From Blastocystis sp. Blastoise (Eukaryota; Protista; Bigyra: Opalinata), in contig JBBPEB010000020.1 in assembly GCA_039096225.1 (NCBI GenBank), forward strand, positions 1-64,000: a stretch of 64,000 bases of DNA, given 5' to 3'. The notes under the pieces are model-generated. The model was given only the letters and a program-made list of their open reading frames with translations. It was not told the DNA's origin and made no database searches. The translations under genes were made by a program, and so were the position numbers. The stretch's first letter is position 1; every line of letters starts with the position of its first letter. This document shows positions 633 to 33,322 of this stretch, piece by piece.

Positions 633-3600
633 TAATATCTACTTATCTATATATAATAAAAATGCATGATAGTTTATGAATAAGAATTTGTATTCATATT
701 TTCTTTTTTAATAATAGATAAATTTTTTTTTTATATTCATAAAGAATCCATTTCATAATAAAGATGTCTAAAAGTAATGGAAATAAAATTATTTTTTTTT
801 ACATTTTAAAAATTTATAAACTAAGTCATTAAATTTTTCTATGTTTATACATATTTAAAGCTACTTTTGAAAAGAACAAAAAATAAATATAAAAAAACAT
901 TATCGTTTTTTAAAAATGAATTCTTATGATAAGAAAATATATATCATACTTTAATATGTCATATATACTAAAAATAATTATTAGCTTGACTAATATAAAT
1001 TTTCACTATTATAAATAAATATATAGTCGTTGTAATTAAAAAACAATTTTTTCAAACTATTAATAGTATTTATACGGGTACAATAATCAAGAAACAGTAT
1101 TAAAAAAGTAAAAATATTTTGAGAGACATACCACTTTGAATTTTTATTTCTCAGTCAATTTTTATTTTTAAGAACTAATTCTTTATATATTATAATTAGA
1201 ATAAAACATATTATATATTATAAAAATATTGACTTCATTGATAGAAAAATGATGATTGAAATTGACCTTAGTTAAAACAATAAAAACAAAATTTTTGAAA
1301 AGAATAAAAATTTCTTTTTCATTTTTGAACCGGAGATTCAACGATATTTTATATTTTGACTTTATATATATATGTAATATTATATTATCTATTAATATGA
1401 CTTTTAAAAAGTGTGTTAGAACGACTTATTTTTTTACAAAGTCGCAATTAACTTTTTTAACCTTTTTTAAAAAGACTTTAAAGGCAATAAGTATCATAGT
1501 GTAACATATAAGGCATCCTTATATCAAATAGAAAGTCAAAGATCGAAATTAATGAGGTCAAAATAAGCCGATACAACAACTTTGTTGTCATAAATATGCA
1601 ATAATGACAGATTTGTGTATAATATAGGTCACTGTATTCATAAATGTAGTCATAAATTGATTTTATGAGGGTCAACCAAACAGATATCGACTCATTCTTG
1701 TCTTTAAAGAAACCTGATGTGTTCAATGAGTGGCGATTTTTGTCTAAACTACAAATATTAAGTACAAAAGTTTTTATTAAGAGTAAAATGATTTCGATAT
1801 CTCTTCGACCTTTTTATTTTAAAAATATGTTCAAATAATTTATGAATATAAACATCTAGAATAAATCCTGTAACGTTTAAAAATTAATAAAATAAAAAAT
1901 GTTGACAGAACACGTAATTGAATTTTTTTTGTTATTTTTTCAACATGCTAAAAACAGGTTTTAATGACTTTTAGGATGGTTTCATGAGTTATCATGATGA
2001 TCCAGATAGTTTTCATTAAAATTTAAAAGGGTCAAAAGAGAATGTGTCCGATATCTCAAAACTTTGTGGATCAATTTTTTTAAAAGCTTCATACATTATC
2101 ATTATTTAGGTTATTTTATGTATATAGATTAAAGTTAAGTCTATTAAGTCACTTTGATAACTGATTATTTGTCTAAATTGTTTCTTATATTTTAAAAGTT
2201 GTTTTTATGTGTGGCGAAAAATGTTATAAATTATAAAATGAAGTTATAAATAATAAATGTAAAAAAATAAATAAAATATATAAAAAAAGAAATTAAAAAG
2301 AAATAAGAAATTTTAAAAATAAAAGATAAAAAAAAATTGGATAAAAAAATTGCAAAATAAAGTTTTGTAAAAGAAAAAGAAATATAATTGAAATTTTTTT
2401 GAAAGAATGAAGACAAAATGATTAGAAGTATAAACTTTGACCATGTCAATAAATTTTTGGCGCGAAAATAAACAAAGATATTTGTGTTCTTTTTATCCAA
2501 TTAGAATGAGTTTTCAAAAATTTTTAATCGATTTCATAGGACGGCCAACTTGCTAACGGTCGGCAAAACTTCTCGGACTATTTTGAGGCCTTAGATATGG
2601 AATTTTTGAAAAATTAAAAAAACTAAAATAAAATTTGGAACATAATCTATAACATACTGAAAGAATATTTTCATAGTCTTAACCATCATAGAATAAACGG
2701 TCCGTGAACTTAAGACACAAATATCCAACTTCTATTGCCTTTATATATAACATTAGCAATAAACATATTAACAAAAAGATATACAAAATAAGACCTCTTT
2801 TAAAAATTCTCATGAATATCTAATTCTCTTTTAGTTAAAAATTAATTTTTACCGCTAATTTATTTCTATAAGAAAACACAAAAAGTATATCTCTTTCAAT
2901 AATGCTTATATATTTTATATAGAATTCCTGCATATACTATATGACTACTTATTTCACATAAAACCTTTATTTTATTTAAATACACTTTAATTAATTCAAA
3001 ACAATTCAGAATCTACTTTCTGCTAATGATTTTTGTGTTTTTTAAGTGTACTGCCAAAAATGTTCAAATAACCCTGAATTGAACGAGTAAGTTCTCGGGA
3101 AAAAAATCATTCCTTTTTCTGGTTATAACAAAACCGCCCGAACCGGGCAACTGAATTAGCAGAAAATGAGCTGCCCAAATTGTTTATGAAAAACCCAGTA
3201 TTACTGGGTTTTCCATAATTTTTCATAAAAAATTCAAAACTTTTAGTAAATTTTTCAAAAATTTTGGTATTTTTTCATAATTTTTCGTTTTTTTCCAAAA
3301 ATAATTCAATTTTTTCCATAATTAATTACTTTTTTCCAGAAGAGTTTCGTTTTTTTTCAATAAAAATTCAATTTTTTTTCATAATAATTTCATTCTTTAA
3401 TAACTTTTTTAAAAGTATTAGACTTGTATATTTTTTTGAAAAACTAAACAACATTTGAAGACTTTTTAAACAACTTCAACACAAAATTAAGTTTTAAATT
3501 AAGTTTCAATCACTTCATTGTTCAAACAACGACTATGATACGAGATTGAATGACGTTCCCAACCTAAAACATTCTCAATAGTCATACAATCGTTCATTCT

Positions 3601-5071
3601 AAACTTAACCATCTCCTGAATTAGGAAATAGCGATATTCGGTGAGATTCATTTGATGTTGTTGAGCCTCAGCAAGAATATGTTCTTTACTCCAATCAAAT
3701 GAAGAAATACTCTCACGAGCCTTCTATTTAATGGCAGAAAAGCATTCTTCAATAGGATTAAGAAAAGGCGACCAAGGAGGGAGAAACTTGTAAAAAACAT
3801 TTTTTTCACGGAAAACATCAAGAATTTCCGTGGTTTTATGAATGCTACAATTGTCTAGAATGACACAGCATGGTTTATTGGTATGCATCATGTTTAACTT
3901 ATCACAAAGACCAATCAAAAATTCTTTAAAAGAATCTGAACCAACAGAATTCTTAAAAAATTGATGATAAACATAACCAGAGATACTTGAGATTCCAAGA
4001 ACCAATGAAACATTACAAAATCGTTGCCCATCCACAACGAGAATCGCGGGTTGACCCTTAATTGAGCGGCCAAATGTTCGTTTTTCCCAGAGATTAAAAC
4101 CAGCTTCGTCAACGTATACAAAATTATACGCATTGCTGTTTTGGCTAAACCATTGGGTAAATTCTTTTCGTAAGCCAATAGTTCTTTCAGTATTTCTGTC
4201 ACATGGAGACAACTGGATTTTTTTTGAAGTATATAGAAGGCCTTCCAAGACGCGATGAATCGTGGTTATTGACGGAATTTGGCTTTCTGGAAATTGATTG
4301 ACTAGAGTACCCTTTATTTTTCGTAAAGTAATAGCAGGATCTTCATCCACCATTTTAATAATAGCAGACTTTATTTCATCAGTAGTGACTTTGATTGGAC
4401 GGCCGACAGTTTTGGTAGGGACAGAATCATTACGGGGATTTCGACTTTTGCTAAATATTGACCTAGCTGTAGAGATTTTGACATCAAGGGTTTTTAGAAG
4501 CGTTTTTATATCTTCAGGATGCTGCTCAAAGCAACGGATAATTGCATCTTTCATTTCTTTCGTAATCTTTTGATATTTACTAGAGATGAGAAATGACTAA
4601 AGTCACGACTTATGACTATTATTCACGGTTAGTCACCAAATTTTGGCTTAAAGTCGACTATTTTTAATGGGAAATCGTAATCATATGACTAAAAACATAA
4701 AAACTTCATACTTAATATGTTTTTATATATTTCTTGCTTATTTTGTAATTTTTAGCAAAACATATCATTTATTCACATTATAGCGACAAAGTATATCAAG
4801 TAAAAGTCAAAATTAAAAAGAAAAGAAATCAATTATTATACATTTATTTTTTTACACTTTGTTTTTCTATAACAATTGATTAATTTAAATTCTGGGAGCA
4901 TACAGCAAAGCGAAAATGGTAATTTTAAGATAAATTGTATAAAGAGTTTTTATAATTGTGTAGAAAAAACACTGGAAAACTATTTTTAATGAACAATACA
5001 CTGTATTAATAAAAAAACAGTCTATTATGAACATAAAGAAAAAAAATATTTAAATATAATATTAATTAATT

Positions 5072-8190
<3,119 letters not shown>

Positions 8191-10519
8191 TATATGATGG
8201 AGAAATACAAAGAAATAATAATAATAAAATTATCAAAGTCATGACTACTCCCATGAAAAATCGATTTGACTTTTAAAAAACAGCAGTGACTTTTCCCATA
8301 AATTTTTAGTAATCATGAGTCACGATGACTAAAAAAATCACGACTATAGTCACATAAACCTTAGTCATTGCTCATCTCTAATATTTACAACCTTTTCTCA
8401 TAGAATTACGTCTTTGAGTTGCACCACTGTTATTGTCAACGACCTCTTGTTGAGTTGAATCTCCTAAAACCACATTTTGACCACTGATTTCGTCACCAGT
8501 ATGATTATTTTCCATTTTTGAGAGTCTATTTTAAAAAAGAATTATAAAATATATGTATTCGTCAAAAAAAATATACAAAACTATTAATTAATAAAAAATT
8601 ATTAAAAAATGAAATTATTATGAAATTTTTTTGAATTTTTATTGAAAAAAAACGAAACTCTTCTGGAAAATAGTAATTAATTATGGAAAAAATTGAAATA
8701 GTTTTGAAAAAAAACGAAAAATTATGAAAAAGTTTCAAAATTTTTGAAAAATTTACTAAAAATTTTGAAATTTTTGTGAAAAATTATGGAAAACCCAGTA
8801 TTGTCTGGAGTATTTAACTCATTTTATTTAGAAAACTATTGATGGAATTTTTAAAATAATGAAGTCAATTTGAAAAATAACCCAGAAAAAAAATTATATT
8901 AAAGTACCTGAAACAGACTGACCTCCTGTACCAAAGTGACACTTTTTCTAAAAAAACATAATTCTCATGGGAATTTATTTTATTACAGTTAAAAATATTA
9001 AAAAAACATGGAAATCAGTTTTTTCTTCTTAATTGTTAAACAAAACAATACGTGATAACAAATATATATAATAAATAAAAAAATTATAAAAAAAAATGAA
9101 AAAAAATATATAGAAATTATAATAATTAGCATGAATATTAGTACTATAGTATAAATTAGTAATTAATAAATAAAAAGAATATATTTATATATAATTATTA
9201 AGAAGAATATATTATAAAGCATCATCATTTTCTGAGGAAACACTGATTTCATCATTATTAACAGGTCTAGAAGTATATGTTAATATTCTATTAGATATTT
9301 TTGATGATCTATTATTTTCTTTTGCTCTAGAACAATCTTCAAAGTCATGAATGAACTCTTCTTCATTATCAATAAGTAGTTTTGAAGCATCCCAAGCACT
9401 CATAATGTTTCTCCTAGTAAATGATTCACTAAAAGCATTCTCAGAAGCAGAAAGAAGTGAGTATCTACCTGTTTGTTTATAATATCGTCGAAATTTTGAT
9501 TTAAATGCATTATATATTACTAGATCCAGTGGCTGAAATACACTTGTTGTTCCTTTAGGAAGAATAAGTACTTCTACATGATTAATCTTACATAAATCTA
9601 GAAAAGACGTATCATTTCTTGTATTATGAGCATCCATAATTAAAAGACCCTAATCATCATTAGAAGTTAAACCTAAATGGGATCTTTTATTATTAACTGA
9701 TGGAAGGAAAACATCAAGAAGCCATGAAGATAAGATATCTTTATTAATCCATCCTTTAGTATAGAACCATGTAGTTAAATATTCAAGCATTTCTTTTTTA
9801 ATTTTATCTTTATTATATGTGCTCTTATCAACAATATATGAAGAAAGTATACATGTTTCATCTGAACAAATACACCCAATAAGTGTGGTATGTGTTACAG
9901 AAGTACCCTGATCAGTAATAGGTATAGAATCAGTAGTAACAGCAACAACAGTTCTTAATCTCTTTTCTCCACATGTGACCCATGATTCATCCATATTGTA
10001 TATGAGAGAATGATGAATGTTTCTTTCTTTAATAATATAATGGATATTTCTATATAATGTTTTTGCATCCTTTACTGTTGGTCTCACTTTTGCTACATAA
10101 TTAGTTAATGGCTTCTTCAACTGAATATCATATTTTTTCAATAAATTTCTCACATATGCTTCAGAAACATCTTTTATAACTCCATTTCCTCTTCTTGCAT
10201 TATTGATACTTCTTCTTCTAATCTCTTCAGAAATTTCGACTTTAGTAGGACATTTTTTGATTCTAATACATTCTTTTATCCATTCCACAATTTCCTTTTC
10301 TTCATCATCACTTAAACACTTTTGATTACCAGGATGTAGTAATACACTGGTAGGCATTTTTCATGGGACCAAAATTAAGACAAACTAGAAATTGTTGCTA
10401 AATAATTTTAAGACACTTTTCAGTCATAGCGAATAGAGTAGCCAAAAAATAGGTTATTTTTGTCGGATATAATCTGTCTTTTTCATTCGTTCAGAATTCT
10501 TTTAGAAACGTCATTTTTT

Positions 10520-11128
10520 ATTTATTTATCGTTGTGTGAATGATAATAAAAATATATATAACAAAAGACAATAGATAATAATAAAAAAATAATAACAATA
10601 ATAAAGATAATAAAATAATAATTATTTATAATATTTTTGAGTAATTTGATATCATTTTGGATCACTATATATACATAAATGATAGAAATGATAATAATAT
10701 AGATAACATATAAATATATACCTTTATGTATCACTTGTAGAATACCCCTTGAAGAAAAACCACAACTATAAAAATATAATTTATAAAAATAAATATATTA
10801 TAATAATATACCTTCAACCACCAAACAGACTAGACCAAGAGAAACCTCATGAAGGACCTAGAACCTATATAAAAATAAAAGTAGTTAATTTTAAAAAAAT
10901 AAAATATAATAAAATACCTTCAAAACCAGGGAGTTGTTAACCAAGGAGACCGACAACAACACCTGAACCTATAGAAGATGATAATAATAATAACAAAGAG
11001 AATGCTAAAAATATATACCTTTAATAGCACAAGATTTCTAGTTACATAGACCCCACAACTCATTGTTTAACTTTAAAGAAGAAGACCAATTAGGACCTAT
11101 TTGAATCTATTTGGATAGATCATGAAGA
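10520..11128 (-). other. Conserved 5-exon spliced module of CACTA-A (no intact ORF)
   Basis: GT-AG bounded exons 11128-11019, 10968-10918, 10864-10812, 10765-10722 and 10664 onward; homologous to 31908-32520. Confidence 0.7.
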
Positions 11129-11919
11129 CTATAAAGTTTAAAGCAAATAAAAAATATTATATACATCTTATAATATATAAAAAATATCTGAAAAATAAAT
11201 AAAAATAAAAATAAATATGAGAAACTATTAAATCTTAAAAACAATGAGAAATTCCCCCTTATAAAATCTTTTTTTCTATAATAAAAGTTTGTGTAAATTC
11301 GCTGTTTCCAGGGGTTAAAACATTTTAAAATTTTCCCTTTTTCTCTATTTAAAAGTCTATTTGAATTTTTAATTGATATATAAATGTTATATGTGTCTAT
11401 TAAGCTTAATTATTTAATTATAACAGATTTCCGGACTTAATTAAACAAGAAAATTGTTATTTTAATAAACTATAATTACAATTAAATATATTTGTTAGTT
11501 ATTTTTATATAATACTATTCTATTTATAATAAGAATGCAATAGAGAATCAAAAAATATATTTAGTATAGCTATTTATGAAGATACAATTTACAATTGGCA
11601 ACTTTTGTTTTATAATATGTTTTAGTTCAACGAATCATATATTATTATTAGTGAATAAATAAACTGAGAATGTCTGAGAGGTTTGTAAGTGGTTTTAGAC
11701 ATTATAAAGAATATCATAAAATATAAATAGAAACTGTATTTATGTTAAACTCCTTTTTATGTTATTCCAAAAGAATTCTTTTAAAATATTTTTATTCTCA
11801 AATACTACAAAACAAAATGTATATAAAAAATAAATATAACACAATAAAAAATAGATAAAATAGATATTAGATAATATATATAAATATAAGTAACATATCA
11901 TTATAATACATATAATATG

Positions 11920-17290
<5,371 letters not shown>

Positions 17291-20200
17291 CAAATTAAAA
17301 ATAAAGATAAATTCATATTTAAAGTCAATTTTTTAGTCAAATACTAAAAATTTTCATAAAAATTCATTTTTAATTTTTTTTTAATTTTTTATGACTCAAT
17401 ACTAAAGTAACAAGTTTTAACAATTATATATTACACTATTGACACAACATTATTGTATCCCACTACTTTCAGGTTTTAAAAAAATACTCATTTTTGTTGA
17501 CTCTCTGATCTATTTATATTCTGTTCTAAAAACTATTGATTATAACTTGAAACGTTTTTATAATACATAATTAACTCTAAAAACAACTTTTTAAAAGACT
17601 TTTCTTTGATTCTGAGGAAAAGTAGTTTTTTTATAAGTTTTGACATACTATTTGTATGCGGAACTTTAAGTCATGATAGAATAAAATAAAAAAAAGTCTT
17701 TTAAAATTCTTATGTCCTCTGATATATAATAAAATATAAATAGACTCAGTTTTGAACAAGAAAATTATTCCCGTAAATATTTTAAAAATGAAAAACTCTG
17801 GTCTGATTGCCCATGGAATAAATGGGCTCGGTTCAATTTTTCAGTGTAAAAAAAATATAAATTTTTGACTTTTTGGCTGAATTTTGGTTCTGAGCCATAG
17901 AGGTCAGCTGATTGACTTTTAATTACATTTATGACTCTGAGAGGGTCTTCACTTCAAACACAACTATAAAATATTTTAAAATATTGACCCCATTATTTGT
18001 CGGAATTGCGACTTTAAAATAAAGAAAAACGTTTTGGATATTGTGTGACCCTCAATAAACAAAAAATAATGTCAATTCTTTATTAAAATATGTCTAATAG
18101 GGTTTTTAAAGTCTAATAGAACGTCGTCTTAAAATTTTTGTGAAAATTTTCATTTTTTTGCCTAAGTCTTTTTTTTATTCAAATTTTATTGGCTGAATAA
18201 GTTCTGAACGAAAATTAGCCAATCAAAAACCTTCAAAAACTCAAAAGTGCCTACCAGTGATACTTTGTTATTATTGACATTTTTCATAGATCTTTTTAGA
18301 GTAGAAGGTGAAATATTAGTAACTACTGAAATATCATCGAATGTAAGCTTTTTCATTCCATTTTTTCCATTGAATACTCTTTTCATAATGCATGCTTTTT
18401 TTCTAGGGCTATTTTCTTTCATCACTTCTGGATGATTCAATATTTCTCTCACTTTAATATCTTTATCAATTAACTCCAAATCAGGAACAGAAGGCATAAC
18501 AGAAAATTCGTTATTAGTAGAAGGTGTAGCAGTATCCATAGTTTGTAAAATAAATAGCAATATTTACAAAAATATATTTTTTTAATGAATTAATAATACA
18601 ATAACATATTTTTCTATCTACATGACAGTTAAAAACTGATTTCCATGTTTTTTTAATATTTTTAACTGTAATAAAATAAATTCCCATGAGAATTATGTTT
18701 TTTTAGAAAAAGTGTCACTTTGGTGCAGGAGGTCAGTCTGTTTCAGGCAGGGTTCGCCAAACTGTACTTAAAGTAGGCAATGTACTCCATGAAATTTTTT
18801 TTGTACTCCAAAAAGAGTTTTATTATTATTCTCTCAAACTTCTTTATTTATAAATATATCTTAATTAACACTTATGAGAACAATATTCTACACTAGAATA
18901 TATGTTTTTAATACACAATAAGTTTTTAACTATGCCATTGACCATTTTGGTGTCTACACTCGTTTTTTAGTTGTATATTGTATAAAATGTCATAAGTTAA
19001 TGTATATCTACATTATATATTTGATGTCATTAAAATTTACTCATATCTGAAGAGATCATTTTAGAGATTCACAGTCAAACGATTTTTTTTTAATTAATAT
19101 CAGATAATCATTGATTAACTGTTAATATATATCTAATAATTATGCATAAAAAGCTGTTTACACAAAAAAAAATAAAAATAAAATATTAGTTTACTAAAAG
19201 CAAGTTTAGTTATTTTTTTAAATTCTATTCTTGAAACTGAGGTAAAAATAAAATAGAAATTACTTTTACTAAAAACTAAAGCATATGGTTGCTATAGCAT
19301 ATCAATAATAGATGAATAAAAGAAGACACCCTAATTCAAAGAATGTTGAAATTTTTTTTATATATTATTGTTACACTGCCTGTAGTTCTTGGTTTAATGA
19401 TGCCTGAGTAGCAAATTAGACAATTTCAAACCAAGAAGTTACCATCATGATAGGAATCAGTCAGACTAGCAGTTAATACTATTCTGTCTATATCGTATAT
19501 GGCCATTAATCCTATTTAAACATTAAAAAGAATCGATTCTACTTTATTTTTTTTTGATTATTGTATTTGATCCAGGATAACATAATCGAATGAATTCTAA
19601 GGTATATCTAACATGTTTTTTTTGCATAATATTTTATGAATACTGTAAATTACAACTTTTATTTTGGTTTTCATAATTACCAAAACATTGACTATATTAA
19701 ATATAATTCTTTTAACTAGAATCATAATAATTTGTTGCAGTATCGTTTTCTATCATGTTTATGATAATGTTGTTTTTGTGAAATATAATTTTTAGTAATA
19801 ATCAAAAGTAAATTATAACATTAATATCCTTAATTTAGCAGCCCAAAAGTACGGTGTCTCACACACTTTCACTATTATTGACTTTGTTATTAACTTTTAT
19901 AAAATAAAAATTACATCATAAAATCCGGAACACAATTCTGAAAATGAGTGTTAAAGAAATTTTTCGAAAATTCTAAATTTCTGGCTAAAAAATGCAAAAA
20001 ACCATTTTCGCACAAAATTTTAACCAAAATTATTGGATTATTTTTATTTTAGCCAATATTTTTCATTTTTATAAAAACACTTATCAGGGGCCATCAGGCA
20101 GTACCTCTTAAAGCGGAAAATGGGGAAGCAAAGCGCAAAAAGAGCCAGTTTTCAACAAATTACACTGTAAAATTTATTAAAAAATTACAAAAAAAATCAC

Positions 20201-20611
20201 TAAAAAAACAAAAAAGCAAGTATAATTGTCTCAAAAAACATTGGAATTTTTTCAAAGATGGTGTTTTTGAGTTTATCTCGACATTAGTGACTGGTTTTGG
20301 TTTTTGCGAAAAAGTGACCAAAAATTTGCAAAAATTTGTAAAAATTTTTCCAGCCACAGAAACGTTTGTATCCGTTTTTATTTTAAGGTATTGGTTTGTA
20401 AATATTTTTATGTTTGAAATGAAATTAAATAAAAGAAAATAAGAGCCAGTGCAGTTTTTAATTTTAAATAAGACAACAAAAATTAACCAGTCACGAATTA
20501 AAAATTTTAAAGTAAAAATAAAACAAATCAAAAATGAATAAGTAATAAATGTATACATAAATCAATAGTTTTTATATAGATAATAACAATATATAGAAAG
20601 ATAAACACATA

Positions 20612-23134
<2,523 letters not shown>

Positions 23135-24089
23135 TTATACATATATTTATAAAAAAAATACATATATACATAAAGAAATTTAGGCGGGTTTTTTTTATAG
23201 GCAATTTATATAATTTACCGCGAGAAATAATCATTTACATGGTATTTTCTATTTTAATATTTTGGTTTGTAATTATTTGTAATTAATAAATATTTTAATA
23301 TTAAGTTACTTGTATACATCATATAATAAAAAATAAATTATATTTTGAATTTAAAATACTGAAAATACATAACTGATATTTTATTTATAATATATTGTTT
23401 GAGACAACGGAGAATACATAAAAAATAAAATAGTTTGTAAAAATTTGTACTCTTTAAAGACGAAAAATATTATCAAAATTTCTCCGTCAAATATTAAATA
23501 TATTCAAGAAAAAACACACAATTTTGGTCAAAAATAAAAGAGAAAAAAAGTTTGTAAAAGTTTGTAAAAGTTTGTAATTTACAAACAAAAAAACAAAAAA
23601 CCAAAACCAGTCACTACTCGACATCCTAATCACAACTATAATATTTCCAAGTAAAAAAAGTCAATAGTCAAAGAGAAAATCGAAATAATCGTTGAAGCGC
23701 AAAAACGACCTCTCAAAGCGCACTTTGCGCTTCAAGCGCACTTTTGGTGGCCCCTGACACTTATTTTTCCATTTTCATTTTTTATTGTTTTCTTATTTTT
23801 CCTATATCACTTCACATACTCTATATTTATTTTTATAAAATTGACTTTTATTGACGGGTTAGTCTTATAAATAGTTTTGACGGGTAAATTTGTTTATATT
23901 TACAACTTGACAACATATCAATACACACATCACTAACTATAAACTCTAAAAACATTTCATATGCAATGATACTGACCTCAACTACTCTAAAACAACAATA
24001 ATTCCTTTAAATAACGACAAAAGACAAACTGATATCCGACACATTCCTTCTTTATAAACTTATTTGAGTTTATTCAAGTTATTTAGAAT

Positions 24090-25300
24090 CAATACATGTC
24101 ATAAGTATATCTTTTAGTTGTTTAAAAAGTTTTAATAAGAAAATATTTGATAATAGAAATTTTGATGTTTTGATAGTATAGTTTGTTATTTGTCTTTCTC
24201 CTTGAGTTTTGGGTATTTTTTAAAAATAAAAGTATAATTATAATTAAGATAAGCTATTGCAGATACATATTTTTTATTTTATCTAAATATTTAATATTGA
24301 CTGAGAAACATTCATTTATATGAAAAACATAAAAATGAAAATTTTCAAAAAAAGGGTATAGTTTGTTATTGTGATTTCTCAATCAATTCTTAATAAAATA
24401 AAAAAGTTAAAACATATTTAGAAACTAGACATGTCATAGCAGATACATATTTTTCATTTTTTTAATTAATTGAAAACTCAGGTGACAAGAGTCAATAGTT
24501 GAACTCAATAAAAAATGACTTTCAAAAAATTTTCTTAAAAAGTTTTCATTTGTTTTTTGTTTATATTTTCATCATTAACAATTTTATTTGACATTTGACT
24601 TTATATTTAAAAACTACATACCAAAATAAACATATTTTACAATTTTATTTTGTTTTTAAAAGACTTTGACAACAGATCACCAGACAATGTTAACTCAATA
24701 AACTCTTAAAACGTTTTAATATGTGTTTAGAACCACTCATAGACACTGTACGTGACTTATTTGAAAAAGTTAAGACAACATGTTGAACTGATACAGACAA
24801 TGTTTGCTTTAAAAAGTCAGTTATGAGTCATTATGAGTTGTATATGTCATAAATAAGCTTTAAATAAATAAATTTGTTTTTAAAAATCTTTAATTAGTGA
24901 AATAAGTCGTTTAAAAAAAGAAAATGTTTTTGAGACTAAAGTTTATTTTGACAATTTTTCCATCAATATTAATTTTTAAAAAATAAATAAAACTTATATA
25001 TAAACTAGACAACCTATAGTTTATATATTTATAAAAATCTTATCAAAATATATAATAACTTTTGAGAAAAAAAATTATATATGCAAAACATAAAAAAATT
25101 AATTTTTGGAAAAAGGGTATACTTTATAACATTAATTTCTCAGTCAATATTTAATTATTTAATATAATTTTAGCAAATATATATAGAGAATAAAATATAT
25201 TAACGATATAAATTTTAACATTTAAAATTAATTAAGAAATGAGTTCAGTAGAGTCAATAGTATAACATGTTAAAAAACTGAAAATTGAAAAATCGTTTTT
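24090..25300. repeat. Degenerate ~180 bp direct/inverted repeat units
   Basis: TATAGTTTGTTATT at 24177 and 24357, and GCAGATACATATTTTT at 24259 and 24439 (180 bp period). TATTGACTGAGAAA (~24295) is the reverse complement of TTTCTCAGTCAAT (~25136, also ~1147). Confidence 0.6.
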
Positions 25301-26483
25301 CTAAAAATTTTCTGAAAGTTGACAAATCAAATTCATATTTGACAATTAATTTTTACATTTTTGAAAACTAAACCTTATGTGTATTGCAAATCTCAAAAAA
25401 ATAGTCAAAAGTGGAGTTGACAAGTGTATGAGTATATGCACATGTTGGCTCATAATTTTATAAAAAGTAGTTCAATATGTCCTAAACCACATATTAGGAC
25501 AATTCTGAAAATATTATCACTTTATAATGAGTTTAAAGGGTAAAATAGTATTGAATTGTCTGTTTGACTGTCTTAAGTCAAGAGATTCAATACACTTTTT
25601 GTAAAAATGAGTATAAGAGTGTTTAATGTTTATAATAATAATAGAATTGTTTGAAATAAAGGTGGTTGTGTGTTTGACCAAAATGTTAAAATGAGTCTAT
25701 TTTAAAAAAATGGTTGTAATAAGAAAGTATTGAGTGTTTTTGGAGTATTTTATATTAAAATCTACAATAAATAAACATTTTAAGTTGTTTAAAAATTTGA
25801 TTCTTTAGAATTACAATAGTTAAGTCAAGAGATTCAAGTCACTTTTTATTAAAATAATAAATAAACTTATTATAGAATATAAAATATTAAAAATTAATTT
25901 AATTAAACATGGTTGACTGTTTGATAGGAATGTTAAAATGGGTAAAAAGATTTTAATTGTTTCTAAAACCGTATAATACGTTTTTTTGTCACTAAATACA
26001 AGAATATTATCGTTTAAGGAATGTTTTCTTCTTTCAAAAGAACTCATTTTTTGTAATTGTGACTTTAAACAAATGAAATTCAAGTTACTTTTTATAAATT
26101 AAAATAATAAATTAAATATATATGTATATTAATATAAAATTCGTTTTAATAAAAGTGAGTATATGTATTTCAACACTAGTAGGCACGTTTTTCGCGTTAG
26201 ATATATTTTTGGGTCACGTTAGAAAACGAAAACGCACCAAAGCGTTCTCGCCTTTTTTTTAGACATACTTTTAAAATTTAGACAGACATCTGGTTTTTTA
26301 AGAAAGGATAAAATTTGAAAAATTAGATATGAATTATGAATTCATATATATTTTTTTAAATTTGTTGTTTATATGAACATACTAGAACTGATTACAGTGA
26401 TTATAGATGTTTCTAAGCAGTGCTCATGATGTGTTAGTATTTATTTATAAAATTTATCATAGTGTTTTACATCATTCTTATAG

Positions 26484-28564
26484 GTTTTCCATTCTGGATA
26501 TCCTCTTCCTTTCAGACATTCTCCTTGAGTAGTTTTAGAAAGGTACATAACATTGACGCGTTGTTTTATTTATTATAAGGTATTTTATTACATTTCTTTT
26601 TTAATTCTCTTAGATTTCTTGGTTATTCTCGTCAATACTTCTTCCAAACAACAGGTCAAGACAATATAGAGCGTATATAAATATATCTATTTAATTTTTT
26701 ATTGCATTGGCACTTATTTCTCTTTTTTTCTCTTTTCCTATCAAAAATATTCATTTGATTTTTAGTTACTCTATTCATATTTTATATATATTTACAATTT
26801 ATATATTATATAGAAAAGTTATTTCTTACTCCATTCTTTAATTTTGTGGTTTCTCTGATATTTTCAAATACCAAATACGATATCAGTTGTAAAATAGTTT
26901 GTATATATATATGTTTATTTATATATATTTAATTATTTATTTTTATCTATTTAATTATATTATTAATATAAGAATTTATTTATTTGTTTAATTATATATA
27001 ACATTTATGTATTATATATATAGATGAGAAATGATTTGGTATTCGTGATTGTATTATTCATTATACAGATAATTTTATTACAAAACAACCTTCAAATTAT
27101 CCAAAATATATATATTCAAATTTATATTCAAAAGAAGATAGAGTAGAAACAGTATGTGATAAAGTGAATGATTATGCTGATAATAATATTCGAATTTTTG
27201 TTGCTATTTCTCCTATAATATATACAATGAGTACCTATTATGATTATACTGCTGCAGGAGATGGATGTTGTTTCGTAGAGAATATTACTGATGATTTCCA
27301 TAATAATGAAGTGATTTCTCGATTATGCTGCTTAGATCCCCAAGGGAATACTGACTTTCAGAAATGGGGAAGTTCTAAAGAAACTGGATTCGTTGAATCA
27401 GAACTCAATGATTATGATCTTCCTGTATATATATATATATATAATATTTTTTTTTTATTCTTCTTTTTTATAGTGCATCTATGAATTCTACATATTCTAC
27501 ATTCAATACATGGTTTACAGAAAGTAATAATTCTTATTCTTTCTCTTTTCCTCTTATTGGTATTATGGGTACCAAAAACCTTCTTACTCTTAATTAGTAT
27601 ATATATTATTATTATAATTATATTTTAGTTTATTATTATATTAATTATCAATCTATAGATTCAAGCTATTTTGTTACCTGATGTATCATCTTTTCGTCAT
27701 TTATTCTTACAATATACATTCGAAATAACAACTTACTTATTACTATAAGAATAAAAAGTATATTATTTATATTATATATATATATATGGTATTTATATAA
27801 TAACATATTTTTTAATCCTCCGTTTCTAATTAATATTATGCACTTATATATAATAATGATAATAGGTTTTATATAAATATTTATTTATAGTTTCGATGTA
27901 CATCCAAATATATAGAAGATTCTAGATGTTTCATCATGTGATCATATCGTGACTCCCTCAATCCCCATTCAACGGACACTATTCTCTGTATGTACCTCAA
28001 GTTATATGTTGAGGTATATAGAGATAAACTACATTATTATTAATATTATTACTCTTTATATAAATCTATAGAGGCTTCTTTATATGAATATATAACTGTA
28101 TTACAACTATTATTGGCAGATGTTAACCTTGGAAAAGATGTATATATATATATATTAAATATGTTATTACTATTATTATGTATATAGTTTGAATACTTAT
28201 TTTCTATGTATAAATTAAGCATATATATATATATAGTTACTCTCTTTCTTCACTTGACACTATTTGTAATGAAAGGTGTATATATATATATATTATGGTA
28301 TATTTATTATTATTATATATATAGTTATTAAAATTTTTTACCAAGTGATTTTCCCAGCCAAATTGATGTTGATGAATATATTAATACACTGAAATTTGCT
28401 GAAAAATGAAAAATGTAATTATATTAGTTTTTATTATGATTTATTTATATATATATATATAGTTATCAAGATCCTTATGATTATCAAAAATTATATATTA
28501 ATATATATATATATATATATATATTTATGAGATATAATATGTAAAATATAATTGATGTATATAA

Positions 28565-28595
<31 letters not shown>

Positions 28596-29156
28596 GGAAT
28601 AACTAATTTAACTACATTATTTAATGATCTTCAAACGATAAAGAAATCTGCTATTTATAAATCACTTGTTCAATACATACGAGACAGAGTATATAACTAT
28701 ATATATCTATATATTACTTATATATATTACTTATTATATATAGGATATATTAGATGTATTATTCCAACAGTGTTTAAATACAGAAACATTACGATTGTCT
28801 CTCTCTCTCTTCTTCAACATATATGTACTGTTATCCTTGTATATTCTTATTCTTATTATATTCTTTATTAATATATATATAATTATTCTTATTCATATAT
28901 ATATAGTTAACAAATAAGAATATTGATATATTTTATGAGGCTGCTCATAATAACCGTATATATGAATCCATTCAAGCAACTACCATTATATGTCAACTAC
29001 TCCCTCTCTTCCCTAATCAACGTATATATATATATATAACATTATGCTTTTTATTATTATATATTCTTATATATAGAACGTGAATATTTACAAAGTTTAT
29101 TATTGAATACATGTGATAATATATGTACAGTACAAGTATATATATATATATATACT

Positions 29157-29189
<33 letters not shown>

Positions 29190-29473
29190 ACTTATACATA
29201 TATATAAATACTTATATTCATATTATATATAGAGTATTAAGGTATAAGTAAATTGTTAGTATTATATATAAATGACATCCCTGAATCACAACCTATTCCT
29301 GATTCTATTCGAAATTCTATTGTATATATTATGTATTATAATAACATTCTTATTATTATTATAGAAAACAGTTGGTGAGTATATTTTCCGTTAAGGATGT
29401 ATTTGTACTCCCGAATCAAATGAAGAAAAGCACGTGATATTCCATTGATTCCACTTTATAAATCAGATAGCTT

Positions 29474-29510
<37 letters not shown>

Positions 29511-30384
29511 ATTATTATTATATTATTATTATTATAGATTTCTTAACAACATGGTTTAAGAATGCAATATATTTAAATGATGGTTATAAATCATTCTTTA
29601 ATTTATTATATACTTTTGAACCTTCTTCTGAAATTCATTTTAATCTATATACTTTATTATCTCGTTTTTACTTACAATATTATATCATCAATTGACATAT
29701 AATACAAAGAAGAGAAATAATATTAGTAAGTCTATATATATATATGAATTGAATTACATTCCTCAAGATATTATGTATACATTATTAGCAAGAATAGCTG
29801 ATATTATACAAATAGCTCTCTGCCCTTCTTCTTATATACCTCCTCAACTACATACATTAAAGAAGATAAATAGTCATTCTATTTCCTTTAATATGAGTCA
29901 TAATAGTTTAGAAGAAGTATATAGTCCTCCTTTTCCTCCTCCTCCTACTACTACTAATTATTTCATAGGTGCATATAAAGATATAGAAAATGATTTAATG
30001 GATGATAATGATATGGAAGTACCTGAAGAAGAAGAAATAGGATTAATGAATACTTATGAAGAGAAAGAAAGAGGAGAAGGGGAAGAAAAACCTACTGGAG
30101 AACTGATTTATGGATTAAGTTATATACTGAATACTGTTGAAATTGAAGGTGAAGAAGAAACAGGAAAGAAAAAAGAAAAAGAAATGATAGATATGTTTAC
30201 TTATATAGGAAAAGGAGAAGAAGAAGATGATCATTGTATGTTTTATATTAATTATATTAATTATATTTATTATGGTTTTATTATGTATAATATATAGCTA
30301 TTGGTGTTCAATATGTATATTCTCTTCTTCGTAATCGACTGAAAACCGCGAATAAAGAAGAAAAATATGATGTGAATATGATTT

Positions 30385-30461
<77 letters not shown>

Positions 30462-31150
30462 ATTATATACAATCTATAGATATGTGAATCTTTCTTCATC
30501 TACTTATATGATCTTCTTATTAAATATTTTATTAGGTATATATATACATATATTAAATATATCTTTCTTTTAGATATACTTAATTATTCCCGTGGTTATA
30601 TACTACTTTCCTCTTATCTTCTCCTTCATCTTCCCTCCTTACAGTGGCTTGTTGTCTTTATAAATCAATAATCGCGGGAAATACTTACTCTCAAGAATAT
30701 TTTAATTATGTATATATATATTCACTTTATATAACTTTTGATGTAGCATATTATATATTATTTACTATTTTATATTTGTTATTAATTATATAATATATAT
30801 ATATATATAGATAGATATTAGACATACTACAAACAAGGCTTATTATATACTTATGAACTACAGATACATCAATATATATACTGCTACATACCTCCTATAA
30901 TACCAGCGTTTTATATCCCTCATTGAGAACCATAATTATCAAAACATTATTATATGTCTTGTATATATATATACTATTATACTTATTATATTTAATATTT
31001 TTATTTTATTATTATATATGTTATATAGACTGATAGATAATGCGCTTTGTATATTGTAGATGATGAAAAATCTCATATATATATATACTAAATTATAGAT
31101 ATTTTTATAATTAATTTATATAGGATAAAGAAAGAAGTCATATACATATA
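26484..31150 (+). pseudogene. Array of host-like exons carried by CACTA-B
   Basis: About 20 GT-AG bounded coding-like blocks, all on the plus strand (e.g. 27024-27424 ...ISRLCCLDPQGNTDFQKWG..., acidic block 29539-30236), with in-frame stops and incompatible phases. Confidence 0.65.
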
Positions 31151-31907
31151 TATATTTTTATTGTCTATTAACTTTTATATATGTCTTCTATTATGTTATA
31201 TTTAATTATATATTATTCATTTTGTTTTGTAAATATTATAGAATGAGATTATTGTAAAGAATTCTTTTCGAATAATAGTAAAATGGAATACGTATTAATC
31301 CTGTTTATATTTTTATTAGATTTTATTATTTTATGTTGATAACAACTTGCAAACCTTCTCAATTCATTCACTTACTTATAATATCAACAATCCATTAAAA
31401 TAAAATATATTATAATAAAAATGTTTGTAAAATGTGAATAATGACTTTATAAACAACTATGTCAAATATATATTTTTATTCTCTATGATATTTATATTAT
31501 GAATCAAATACTATTATATATATATTACTCACAAATATTTTAAATTGAAATTACATTCTGTTAAAAATAAAATTTTTTTGTTCTTTTAAGTCTAGAAACA
31601 TGTTGTAATGAAGTAATCTAGCTTAATACATATAAAATACATTTATAACTCAATTTAGCATTCAAATAGACGTTTTAGTAGAAAAAAGGAGAATTTTAAA
31701 GAATTGATAACCCCTGGAAATAAAGAAATTTATAGAGACTTCTATTATAGAAAAAAAAGATTTTCTGTATTTTTAGGGCCATGTATGTATTTTTAAAATA
31801 AATTCTAAAAAAATTACATATTTATTTTTATTTTTAATTGGTTTATAACTATATTATATAGTTTTTTAAATGTATACAATATACTTTAGCTATTTTATAT
31901 CATATAG

Positions 31908-32520
31908 GCTTACGGGTCCGTCGAAATAGCTTCAAATAGGTCCTGATTATTCTTCATATTTTAAAGTTAACTCATGAGTTGTGTGGTTTAGGTGATCCGA
32001 AATCCGGTGCTATAAAAGGTATATTTTTTTCCATTGTTGTAGTTTTTTTATTAATATTATCTTCTATAGGTTCAGATGTTGTAGGAGGTCTCCCTAGTCG
32101 ACAACTTCATGGTTCTAAAGGTATTTAATTATATTAATATTTTTTGAAATTAACTATTTTTTATTTTTATATAGGTTCTAGGTTTTCTCAGTGGTTCCGA
32201 TTGGTCAACAATTTCTTGATGGTTGAAGGTATATTATTATATTATATATATTTGTTTACATCTATTTTTATAGTTGTGGTTTTTCTTCATGGAGTCGCTT
32301 TAGAAGTATTATTACAAGGTATATATTTATTTATTATCTATATTATTATTATTTCTATTATTTTTATATGTATAGTCATTAAAATGGTTCCCAATTTAGT
32401 TAAAACAAACAAAGATAATTATTATTTTTCTTATTTTTCTTATTGTTTTAATTATTATATTATTATTTATTGTCTTTTGTTAATATAATTTTAATTATCA
32501 TTCACACAACGATTAAATAA
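31908..32520 (+). other. Conserved 5-exon spliced module of CACTA-B
   Basis: Exons 31908-32018, 32070-32120, 32175-32228, 32274-32318 and 32376 onward; every splice site has a counterpart in CACTA-A. Confidence 0.7.
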
Positions 32521-33322
32521 ATAAATAAGACAGATTTTATCCGACAAATAGCACCCAAATTTTATCTTAAAAATACATGATAATGTGTTTAAAATGTGTA
32601 TTAGAGAAAAATATAGATACCTTTAGAGCAGATAAAATACAAATAGACATATATTTGCCTTGTGTTAGAAAAGAAAAACACCAAAAACTGCTCTTAAAAA
32701 AAAAGATGCCAGCTGGGTCAAACGTGTTAGATAACTTCCTGGCTTTTGGTTAGAGAAGATTTTTTGTCGTTAGATAAGAAAATGGCCCATTTTTTAGATA
32801 AGGTTTTGGTTACCCATTAGATAGATTTTTTTACTAAAAAACAAAATGCCTACTAGTGCAAAATGTTATAGTTTTTTAGAGTTTTTTTATGATAACTTAT
32901 TTGTTGTGTAAACTCTATTTTATAAACAATACTATAGTTTTTTAAGTATTTAAATATATTTACTAATGAAATAGAATGTAATCTTTATTTTATATATAGT
33001 TAATTTTTATTTTTTAATTTTCTTTTTATGAAACAATTATTGATAATATTAATAAAATATGAAACCATTATTGATAATATTAATAAAATAAAACAAAATT
33101 TGAAATAAATAATTTTTATATAATGAAAAGATAGTCTTTTTACAAATTATTTTTTTATGTTTATTTAGATTCAAGCGTAGGCTGGCGTAGCCAGTCGTGA
33201 AACGCTTGTATAATATAACATTTTCAATCATTATAGAAATTATAATATAAAAGAAATCATATCGTTTAAATATATAGGGCCTTTTATAGTTGATAAACTA
33301 AGTCACATAATAGTTTGCATGT

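Follow-up and report, generated by a model that had tools for sequence, protein, structure and literature searches.

We analysed a stretch of 64,000 nucleotides from Blastocystis sp. Blastoise (contig JBBPEB010000020.1, positions 1 to 64,000 of the forward strand), referred to below as the window, and focused on two related transposable elements in it, A and B. The two probably represent non-autonomous CACTA subfamilies (CMC/EnSpm-type) for which the transposase is supplied in trans; both have an exchangeable three-module build, and their centres are stable cargo. The host, a Blastocystis of the tortoise gut, has a genome of 33.3 Mb with 23% GC, and tortoise Blastocystis isolates were reported to range from 26 to 33.3 Mb and from 21 to 23% GC (Genome Res 2025, PMC12129017). 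Transposon families were not described in the paper on the tortoise-isolate genomes (PMC12129017), and our literature search linking Blastocystis with CACTA found no paper. Coordinates of the features are collected in Table 1; loci elsewhere in the genome are written as a C number with coordinates, and positions within A and B follow the sense orientation of an earlier sequence-only reading of the window.

Both elements are bounded by perfect terminal inverted repeats (TIRs) of 12 bp. In element A, CACTGGTAGGCA occupies 10345-10356 and its precise reverse complement 18248-18259, with the target-site duplication (TSD) ATA at 10342-10344 and 18260-18262. Element B has CACTAGTAGGCA at 26174-26185 and the reverse complement at 32847-32858, and its TSD is CAA (26171-26173 and 32859-32861). 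The 12-mer CACTRGTAGGCA was found 101 times in the 33.3-Mb genome, as compared to four times for a reversed control, and a matching 3-bp TSD was present in six of the eight element copies with both flanks available. Element A interrupts an open reading frame (ORF), and in silico excision of A together with one ATA gave a 331-amino-acid (aa) open frame reading ...KNVNNNKV/LLHPGNQKC.... This split ORF was judged by eye to be pogo-like, of the DDE_1 type, and the nested insertion lies close to the contig start. No transposase remnants were found in A, in B or in the whole window by tblastn with 21 CMC transposases of the genome. Taken together, A and B are supported as mobile CACTA-type elements without a transposase. 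In B the motif TTAGA[CT]A occurs four times in the first 400 bp (26174-26573), four times in the last 400 bp (32459-32858) and twice in the 5.9-kb interior, every time on the same strand, and is a candidate binding-site repeat; no clear subterminal repeat motif was found in A. No tRNA was detected in 9000-34000 with ARAGORN, and Rfam gave no families in element A or in 28000-33000 at expect values (E) up to 0.1.

The two elements were then compared with each other. With blastn, A 1043-1428 was 69% identical to B 266-642, and A 5560-7746 was 70-81% identical to B 4204-6355. Between the centres blastn and tblastx showed similarity in simple repeats only. No coding signal was found in the shared 2 kb at the 3' end, which lacks codon periodicity and is interrupted by stops in each of the six frames; its conservation is even irrespective of GC content, and it is read as non-coding. 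Much of what the sequence-only reading had described is borne out by these results: the near-identical TIRs with 3-bp TSDs, the missing transposase in A and B, the homology at a 5' block and over some 2 kb of 3' sequence, and the unrelated centres. It had also described co-oriented exon-like blocks, and the NCBI gene models indeed lie on the same strand with GT..AG introns, with spliced models starting in the shared 5' block. Of the exons it proposed to be shared, the 5' block stands, but the reading frame assigned to it does not, as the annotated models use another frame.

Sister copies of both elements were found elsewhere in the genome. Full-length sisters of A, at 92-96% identity, lie at C24:141756-149605, C21:1049069-1056954, C16:944089-951939 and C15:775039-782944, and a short A variant without A 1528-3172 was present at about ten loci. 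About fifteen copies of B were 88-95% identical over the whole length, centre included, among them C21:961440-968053, C4:2171934-2178923, C20:173727-180753, C29:637171-644150 and C31:1142154-1149216. The A copies on C21 and C16 were 100% identical over 4,691 nt, with the identity stopping at the TIR, and similarity likewise ended at the TIR for two short-A copies (C5 and C20, 99.7% identical) and for two B copies (C4 and C8, 99.95%). Because copies at different loci are 99.7-100% identical, the A and B families must have moved recently. The copies in the window are 92-95% identical to their sisters and are older copies of their families. The C15 copy of A is inserted inside a CMC transposase gene (within C15:773541-783465). 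The N-terminal 151 aa of the interrupted transposase are 82% identical and residues 193-569 are 98% identical to the CMC transposase P0011, which indicates that a non-autonomous A copy disrupted an autonomous element. In at least eight other B copies the last 217 bp (32642-32858 in the window) are tandemly duplicated, giving two 3' TIRs; in the C21 copy of B the 3-bp TSD (ATT) fits the outer TIR.

Each centre was a fixed module in all sister copies, at 83-96% identity, and the sole variation seen was the swapping of whole modules between element families. A subfamily C (e.g. C29:586877-593729) is 79% identical to A over 1.2 kb at the 5' end and 89% identical over the 3' 1.7 kb; in the centre it matches B 1425-4548, at 83% identity. 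The 1.65 kb by which long A exceeds short A is flanked by a (TTA)n and a (TA)n tract. The common 5' block of A, B and C, and with it the 5' module of A, ends exactly at an intron acceptor (..TATATAG) and is followed by a different exon in each family. At the other end, the last 226 bp of the window copy of A were 99% identical to a C-type copy and 87% identical to other A copies. Modules have thus passed from one subfamily to another, as in the copies that combine A ends with a B centre, and the joints lie in AT-microsatellite, intron-like tracts; the most likely route would be recombination or template switching during excision-gap repair. As the joints lie at intron-like tracts, such exchanges keep a spliceable exon chain. 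Abortive gap repair with template switching has been proposed as the origin of mosaic DNA transposons among the derivatives of Ac/Ds, P and Mutator. A and B are like these mosaics in that whole modules are exchanged between relatives with joints at short or simple repeats, and unlike them in that these joints fall in (TA)n/(TTA)n tracts resembling introns.

Same-TIR relatives that encode a transposase were also found. The genome contained 75 CMC-transposase matches, 11 of them inside same-TIR intervals; most of these intervals are 13.9-16 kb long and three, of 21-33 kb, apparently hold nested elements. For the element at C15:760025 the far end was not found. The transposase frames of these partners were mostly 792-895 aa without stops (one has 689 aa), with 25-30% identity to a Transposase_21-type query (E 1e-29 to 1e-43). 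The Pfam family Transposase_21 (PF02992) was over the cut-off at four loci, the query transposase scoring 31.9 bits against a cut-off of 28.6. In the paralogs, the partners included, DUF4218 was sub-threshold (18-22 bits against 27) and no Pfam threshold was reached. The transposases share the invariant residues D248, D338, D481xxH484 and E679, and this D, D, DxxH, E pattern would fit a DDE core. Among 1.84 billion representative proteins only 21 relatives were found, and one transposase of the genome is 100% identical to WA158_004695, a hypothetical protein of Blastocystis sp. Blastoise.

In all 11 intervals a GGCAC end, which resembles the 5' end of A and B, lies downstream of the transposase, so that the sense strand of A and B runs towards the transposase. 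In the 13.9-kb elements a block situated about 945 bp in from the transposase-distal end shows 71% identity to B 164-673. At the transposase-proximal side, the tips of three 14.1-kb elements agree with the last 70 bp of A at 96% identity. The shared ends suggest that A and B would be moved in trans by the DDE transposase of these 14-16 kb relatives. The 5' module would derive from the end of these relatives that lies away from the transposase, and be read inward, towards the transposase. A second CMC transposase family comprises three near-identical copies and a relative that is 53% identical; alone among the families it passes Transposase_21, and none of its copies lies inside a CACTRGTAGGCA pair. 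A block like the 3' subterminal part of A is present about 6.2 kb downstream of two of these copies (C19:228871-229037 and C23:197489-197655).

The origin of the centres was examined by searching for homologues outside the elements. In a six-frame search of the own genome, all 29 candidates for the A frame (a 213-aa part) lay in A-family copies and all 54 candidates for the 217-aa exon of B lay in B/C-type copies, and no non-element homologue was found for either. For the 1.65-kb segment of long A no other DNA source was found at about 70% identity or more: its matches were five long copies, one divergent copy on C25 and simple repeats, together with a further A-family copy that matches in part (C8:2361000-2361490). 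The matches of all three queries lay outside the autonomous elements as well. Pfam searches of the ten longest open segments and of the annotated products gave no family. Searched against a collection of 5.8 billion proteins, the A-centre frame matched just four hypothetical proteins of the own genome and a 149-aa segment of B matched just WA158_006865, the 217-aa exon lying outside that search. On these matches the centres would be stable cargo, and there is no sign of an ongoing collection of host exons.

This bears on the proposal of the sequence-only reading that the centres consist of exons serially captured from several host genes at a variable site, as in Pack-CACTA elements, and that the family is a platform making chimeric transcripts. 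The exons are gene-like, share one strand and are separated by introns of the host type, GT(AT)n..(AT)nAG; the cargo borders fall in intron-like microsatellites, a single model (WA158_006865) links an R1-like exon with exons of the B centre, and B 780-1424 recurs at nine loci that are not known as element copies, all of which speaks for capture. However, each cargo is the same in kind across about 15-20 sister copies, only whole-module swaps between element families were seen, Pfam gave no family, and neither of the two segments searched against the 5.8 billion proteins matches another organism. Since the largest exons gave no non-element matches, the defining feature of Pack-CACTA, host-derived internal DNA, was not found for them, nor was it found for the 1.65-kb segment, which is without a homologue outside element copies. 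A lack of homologues other than transposable elements had been named beforehand as an outcome that would refute serial capture, and for the parts searched this is the outcome obtained. The anatomy given with that proposal, a shared scaffold with different middles and joints at microsatellite-like introns, was confirmed. The comparison of same-ended copies and the search for an autonomous partner that accompanied it gave, respectively, cargo fixed per family with modules swapped between families and the 11 same-TIR transposase-encoding intervals. Accumulation of host exons was not supported, as the centres are fixed and the matches of their largest exons confined to sister copies, and we regard serial capture as improbable.

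The segment B 780-1424 and the part of B in front of it need separate mention. The nine loci that match B 780-1424, termed R1, are not among the known B copies, and no exact TIR is present near them. The distance to a contig start is about 75 kb or less for three of them, and another is some 51 kb short of a contig end, provided that C8 is the 2,387,977-bp contig. The R1 loci may be a subtelomeric repeat block or another element family. Part of the segment (27225-27597, B 1052-1424) is present in just three B copies. B 143-780 matches six other loci, termed R2, at 78% identity, among them C13:1009343, C17:777153 and C23:351559, so that the 5' region of B is composite.

Deposited gene models were available for both families. 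On A-family copies there are four, of 373-437 aa (WA158_006198, WA158_006026, WA158_001971 and WA158_006002), one of which has its first exons in the 5' module (A 944-1027 and 1087-1164) and continues into the central exon. In the window these first exons of the sister-copy models correspond to about 17233-17316 and 17096-17173, and the central open stretch of A (13764-14648) has 295 aa, as compared to up to 428 aa in one sister copy. The deposited models differ between copies. In the window WA158_006865 joins the exon in the R1-like segment to exons of the B centre. Its exon at 29233-29241 is a micro-exon of 9 nt (atatatag/AGTATTAAG/gtataagt), which argues that real spliced reads underlie the model. 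The micro-exon also illustrates the intron grammar of the genome, GT(AT)n..(AT)nAG. The ESM Atlas model of WA158_006865 was of low confidence, with a predicted local distance difference test score (pLDDT) of 0.40, and the Atlas look-alikes of WA158_006865 and of the B acidic exon were uninformative.

Coding constraint was assessed among the copies. In the A frame, stops were found in 9 of 14 copies, as compared to 7.9 in simulations, and the frame decays as expected without selection. The acidic exon of B had an in-frame stop in none of the nine sister copies, and the window copy is also open, as compared to 5.0 under simulated neutrality (P about 0.001); frameshifting indels were found in two sister copies. 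The ratio of nonsynonymous to synonymous substitution rates (dN/dS) of this exon was 0.38, the lowest of the six frames, although among these copies the ratio is weakly informative, as the control frames already gave 0.5-0.9.

One account of the central 'genes' is that they are non-functional AT-rich filler whose models come from read-through transcription and permissive splicing. The neutral decay of the A ORF, the low pLDDT of WA158_006865, the lack of homologues in the protein-collection and Atlas searches and the variation of models between copies agree with it. Open frames of 162-428 codons are, however, very unlikely by chance in DNA of 23% GC, the B exon has remained without an in-frame stop in nine sister copies, and the 9-nt micro-exon points to real spliced reads. 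We consider filler very improbable for the centres as a whole.

The centres could also be diverged versions of a TnpA-like accessory gene of the autonomous element, with A and B as deletion derivatives and the centres not cargo at all. In En/Spm, the spliced transcript for TnpA has its first exon in common with that for TnpD, and this precedent, the homology of the 5' module to an autonomous block at an offset of about 945 bp as in A, read inward, and the apparent maintenance of the open B acidic exon would be in line with such a descent. Against it, the six-frame searches with the A central ORF and the 217-aa exon of B gave no match in any of the autonomous intervals, the centres of A and B are dissimilar even at the protein level, and the A ORF decays neutrally, with the number of copies with stops close to that expected. 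An accessory gene therefore appears to us a quite improbable source.

We thus favour the reading of A and B as non-autonomous elements with exchangeable modules and stable cargo. The 5' module would provide the first small exons of the spliced models and, presumably, the promoter. The central module, exchangeable between families, would carry a family-specific spliced orphan gene: in A a serine/asparagine (S/N)-rich protein of about 400 aa that is decaying, and in B the 163-aa six-exon model together with the 162-codon acidic exon, which is still open. The 3' module would be a non-coding stretch of about 2 kb. A further-reaching version, in which the 5' module is a portable promoter with first exons, the microsatellite introns permit swaps of exon arrays, and the family is a platform for the birth of spliced orphan genes, is speculative and in our judgement rather unlikely. 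If it were true, the R1 and R2 modules may have come from host or subtelomeric genes, or have passed into them.

Several points weigh against the favoured reading. Constraint on the B exon is only weakly indicated, the codon-position skew was not significant, and the copies are not independent of each other. The evidence for transcription and splicing is the deposited annotation. The host-gene searches covered the largest central exons and the long-A segment. B 780-1424 is found also at the nine R1 loci and parts of the 5' region of B at the six R2 loci, and these loci could be host genes. Finally, the relation of the autonomous elements to A and B is drawn from match coordinates alone.

Table 1. 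Positions of elements A and B, their modules and gene models in the window, and of related loci elsewhere in the genome.
Feature	Position	Strand	Description
Element A	10345-18259	minus	7,915-bp non-autonomous CACTA, long A subfamily
A 5' module	16835-18259 (element 1-1425)	minus	79-95% identical in A and C subfamily copies
Long-A-specific 1.65-kb segment	15088-16732 (A 1528-3172)	minus	(TTA)n/(TA)n intron-like tracts either side
A central module	12335-15087 (element 3173-5925)	minus	decayed long frame, S/N-rich orphan protein
A 3' module	10345-12377 (element 5883-7915)	minus	non-coding; last 70 bp common to 14.1-kb autonomous elements
Element B	26174-32858	plus	6,685-bp non-autonomous CACTA
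B 5' module	26316-26953 (element 143-780)	plus	164-673 71% identical to block in 13.9-kb autonomous elements
B 780-1424 ('R1'-like segment)	26953-27597	plus	at 9 other loci, 82-85% identity
WA158_006865	27227-29394	plus	deposited six-exon model, 163 aa; no domain hit
WA158_006865 exons	27227-27424, 28744-28824, 28907-29021, 29077-29135, 29233-29241, 29365-29394	plus	introns all GT..AG
B central acidic exon	29758-30243	plus	162 codons, inside open stretch 29644-30294
B 3' module	30377-32858 (element 4204-6685)	plus	homologous to A 3' module; no coding signal
Pogo-like transposase ORF, downstream half	9650-10344	minus	interrupted by element A
Pogo-like transposase ORF, upstream half	18260-18560	minus	other side of element A
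Autonomous-type intervals	C8:599420-613287, C28:499660-513527, C23:437100-451244, C18:6778-20893		
Autonomous-type intervals, continued	C2:77035-93168, C17:856638-872548, C8:2015452-2031433		
Matching block of 13.9-kb element	C28:500604-501106	plus	matches B 164-673
Matching block of 13.9-kb element	C8:611838-612341	minus	matches B 164-673
Second CMC transposase family	C5:498692-501934, C19:219420-222662, C23:203845-207087, C23:373536-376910		passes Transposase_21
R1 loci	C14:72646-73336, C26:31370-32079, C30:19331-20052, C26:1243020-1243738, C13:1250740-1251436		about 700 bp
R1 loci, continued	C14:1272617-1273330, C31:1330601-1331342, C16:2111598-2112322, C8:2337192-2337891		about 700 bp
Extra 217-bp ends of B copies	C5:712182-712398, C13:330172-330389, C31:1141937-1142153, C16:1433300-1433516		
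Extra 217-bp ends of B copies, continued	C29:636954-637170, C23:308823-309039, C8:1380378-1380594		
Tandem 3' ends of C21 B copy	8114 and 8331 of C21:959940-969553		

Known transposon systems share some of these features and lack others. Like En/Spm and its dSpm/I derivatives of the CMC superfamily, A and B have CACTA/CACTG termini, 3-bp TSDs and asymmetric ends. The short motif TTAGA[CT]A near both ends of B is a candidate counterpart of the subterminal repeats of En/Spm, and the large autonomous relatives encode a probable DDE transposase that appears related to Transposase_21/DUF4218. The non-autonomous copies share only the ends and adjacent blocks with their autonomous relatives, as is the case for dSpm/I. 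Unlike En/Spm, A and B reside in a gut protist of the stramenopiles, in a genome whose CMC transposases are very remote from all others, with the partners below Pfam thresholds. Unlike dSpm/I, A and B are not simple internal deletions; the middles of A and B show no relation to those parts of the autonomous elements that were searched.

Gene fragments are carried by several plant CACTA elements, with Tgm-Express and Tpn1 as further examples beside Pack-CACTA. A and B resemble the plant Pack-CACTA/Pack-TYPE elements (Catoni et al. 2018, PMC6379663) in being non-autonomous and in carrying kilobases of gene-like, intron-containing DNA. Chimeric transcripts are a feature of plant Pack-CACTA, and their counterpart in A and B is limited to deposited spliced models. 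In Arabidopsis, closely spaced direct insertions and incomplete excisions of Pack-CACTA were described (PMC6379663), and the many B copies with a tandem second 3' end recall these closely spaced ends. Unlike Pack-CACTA, the cargo of A and B is fixed within a subfamily and the largest exons could not be traced to host genes.

The analysis documents a diverse and, by the near-identity of its copies, recently active CACTA/CMC population in a tortoise-gut Blastocystis, which includes autonomous and non-autonomous elements and very remote transposases. It also shows that host capture need not be the source of large 'cargo' in such elements. For the annotation of this genome it means that several WA158 'hypothetical proteins' are orphan ORFs carried by transposons. 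Module exchange at microsatellite introns offers a natural and testable example of transposon recombination, and the same-TIR transposases are a possible handle for a transposition assay in a group with few genetic tools. If the birth of orphan genes on the 5' module were true, the family would keep generating and spreading new spliced orphan genes in a protist.

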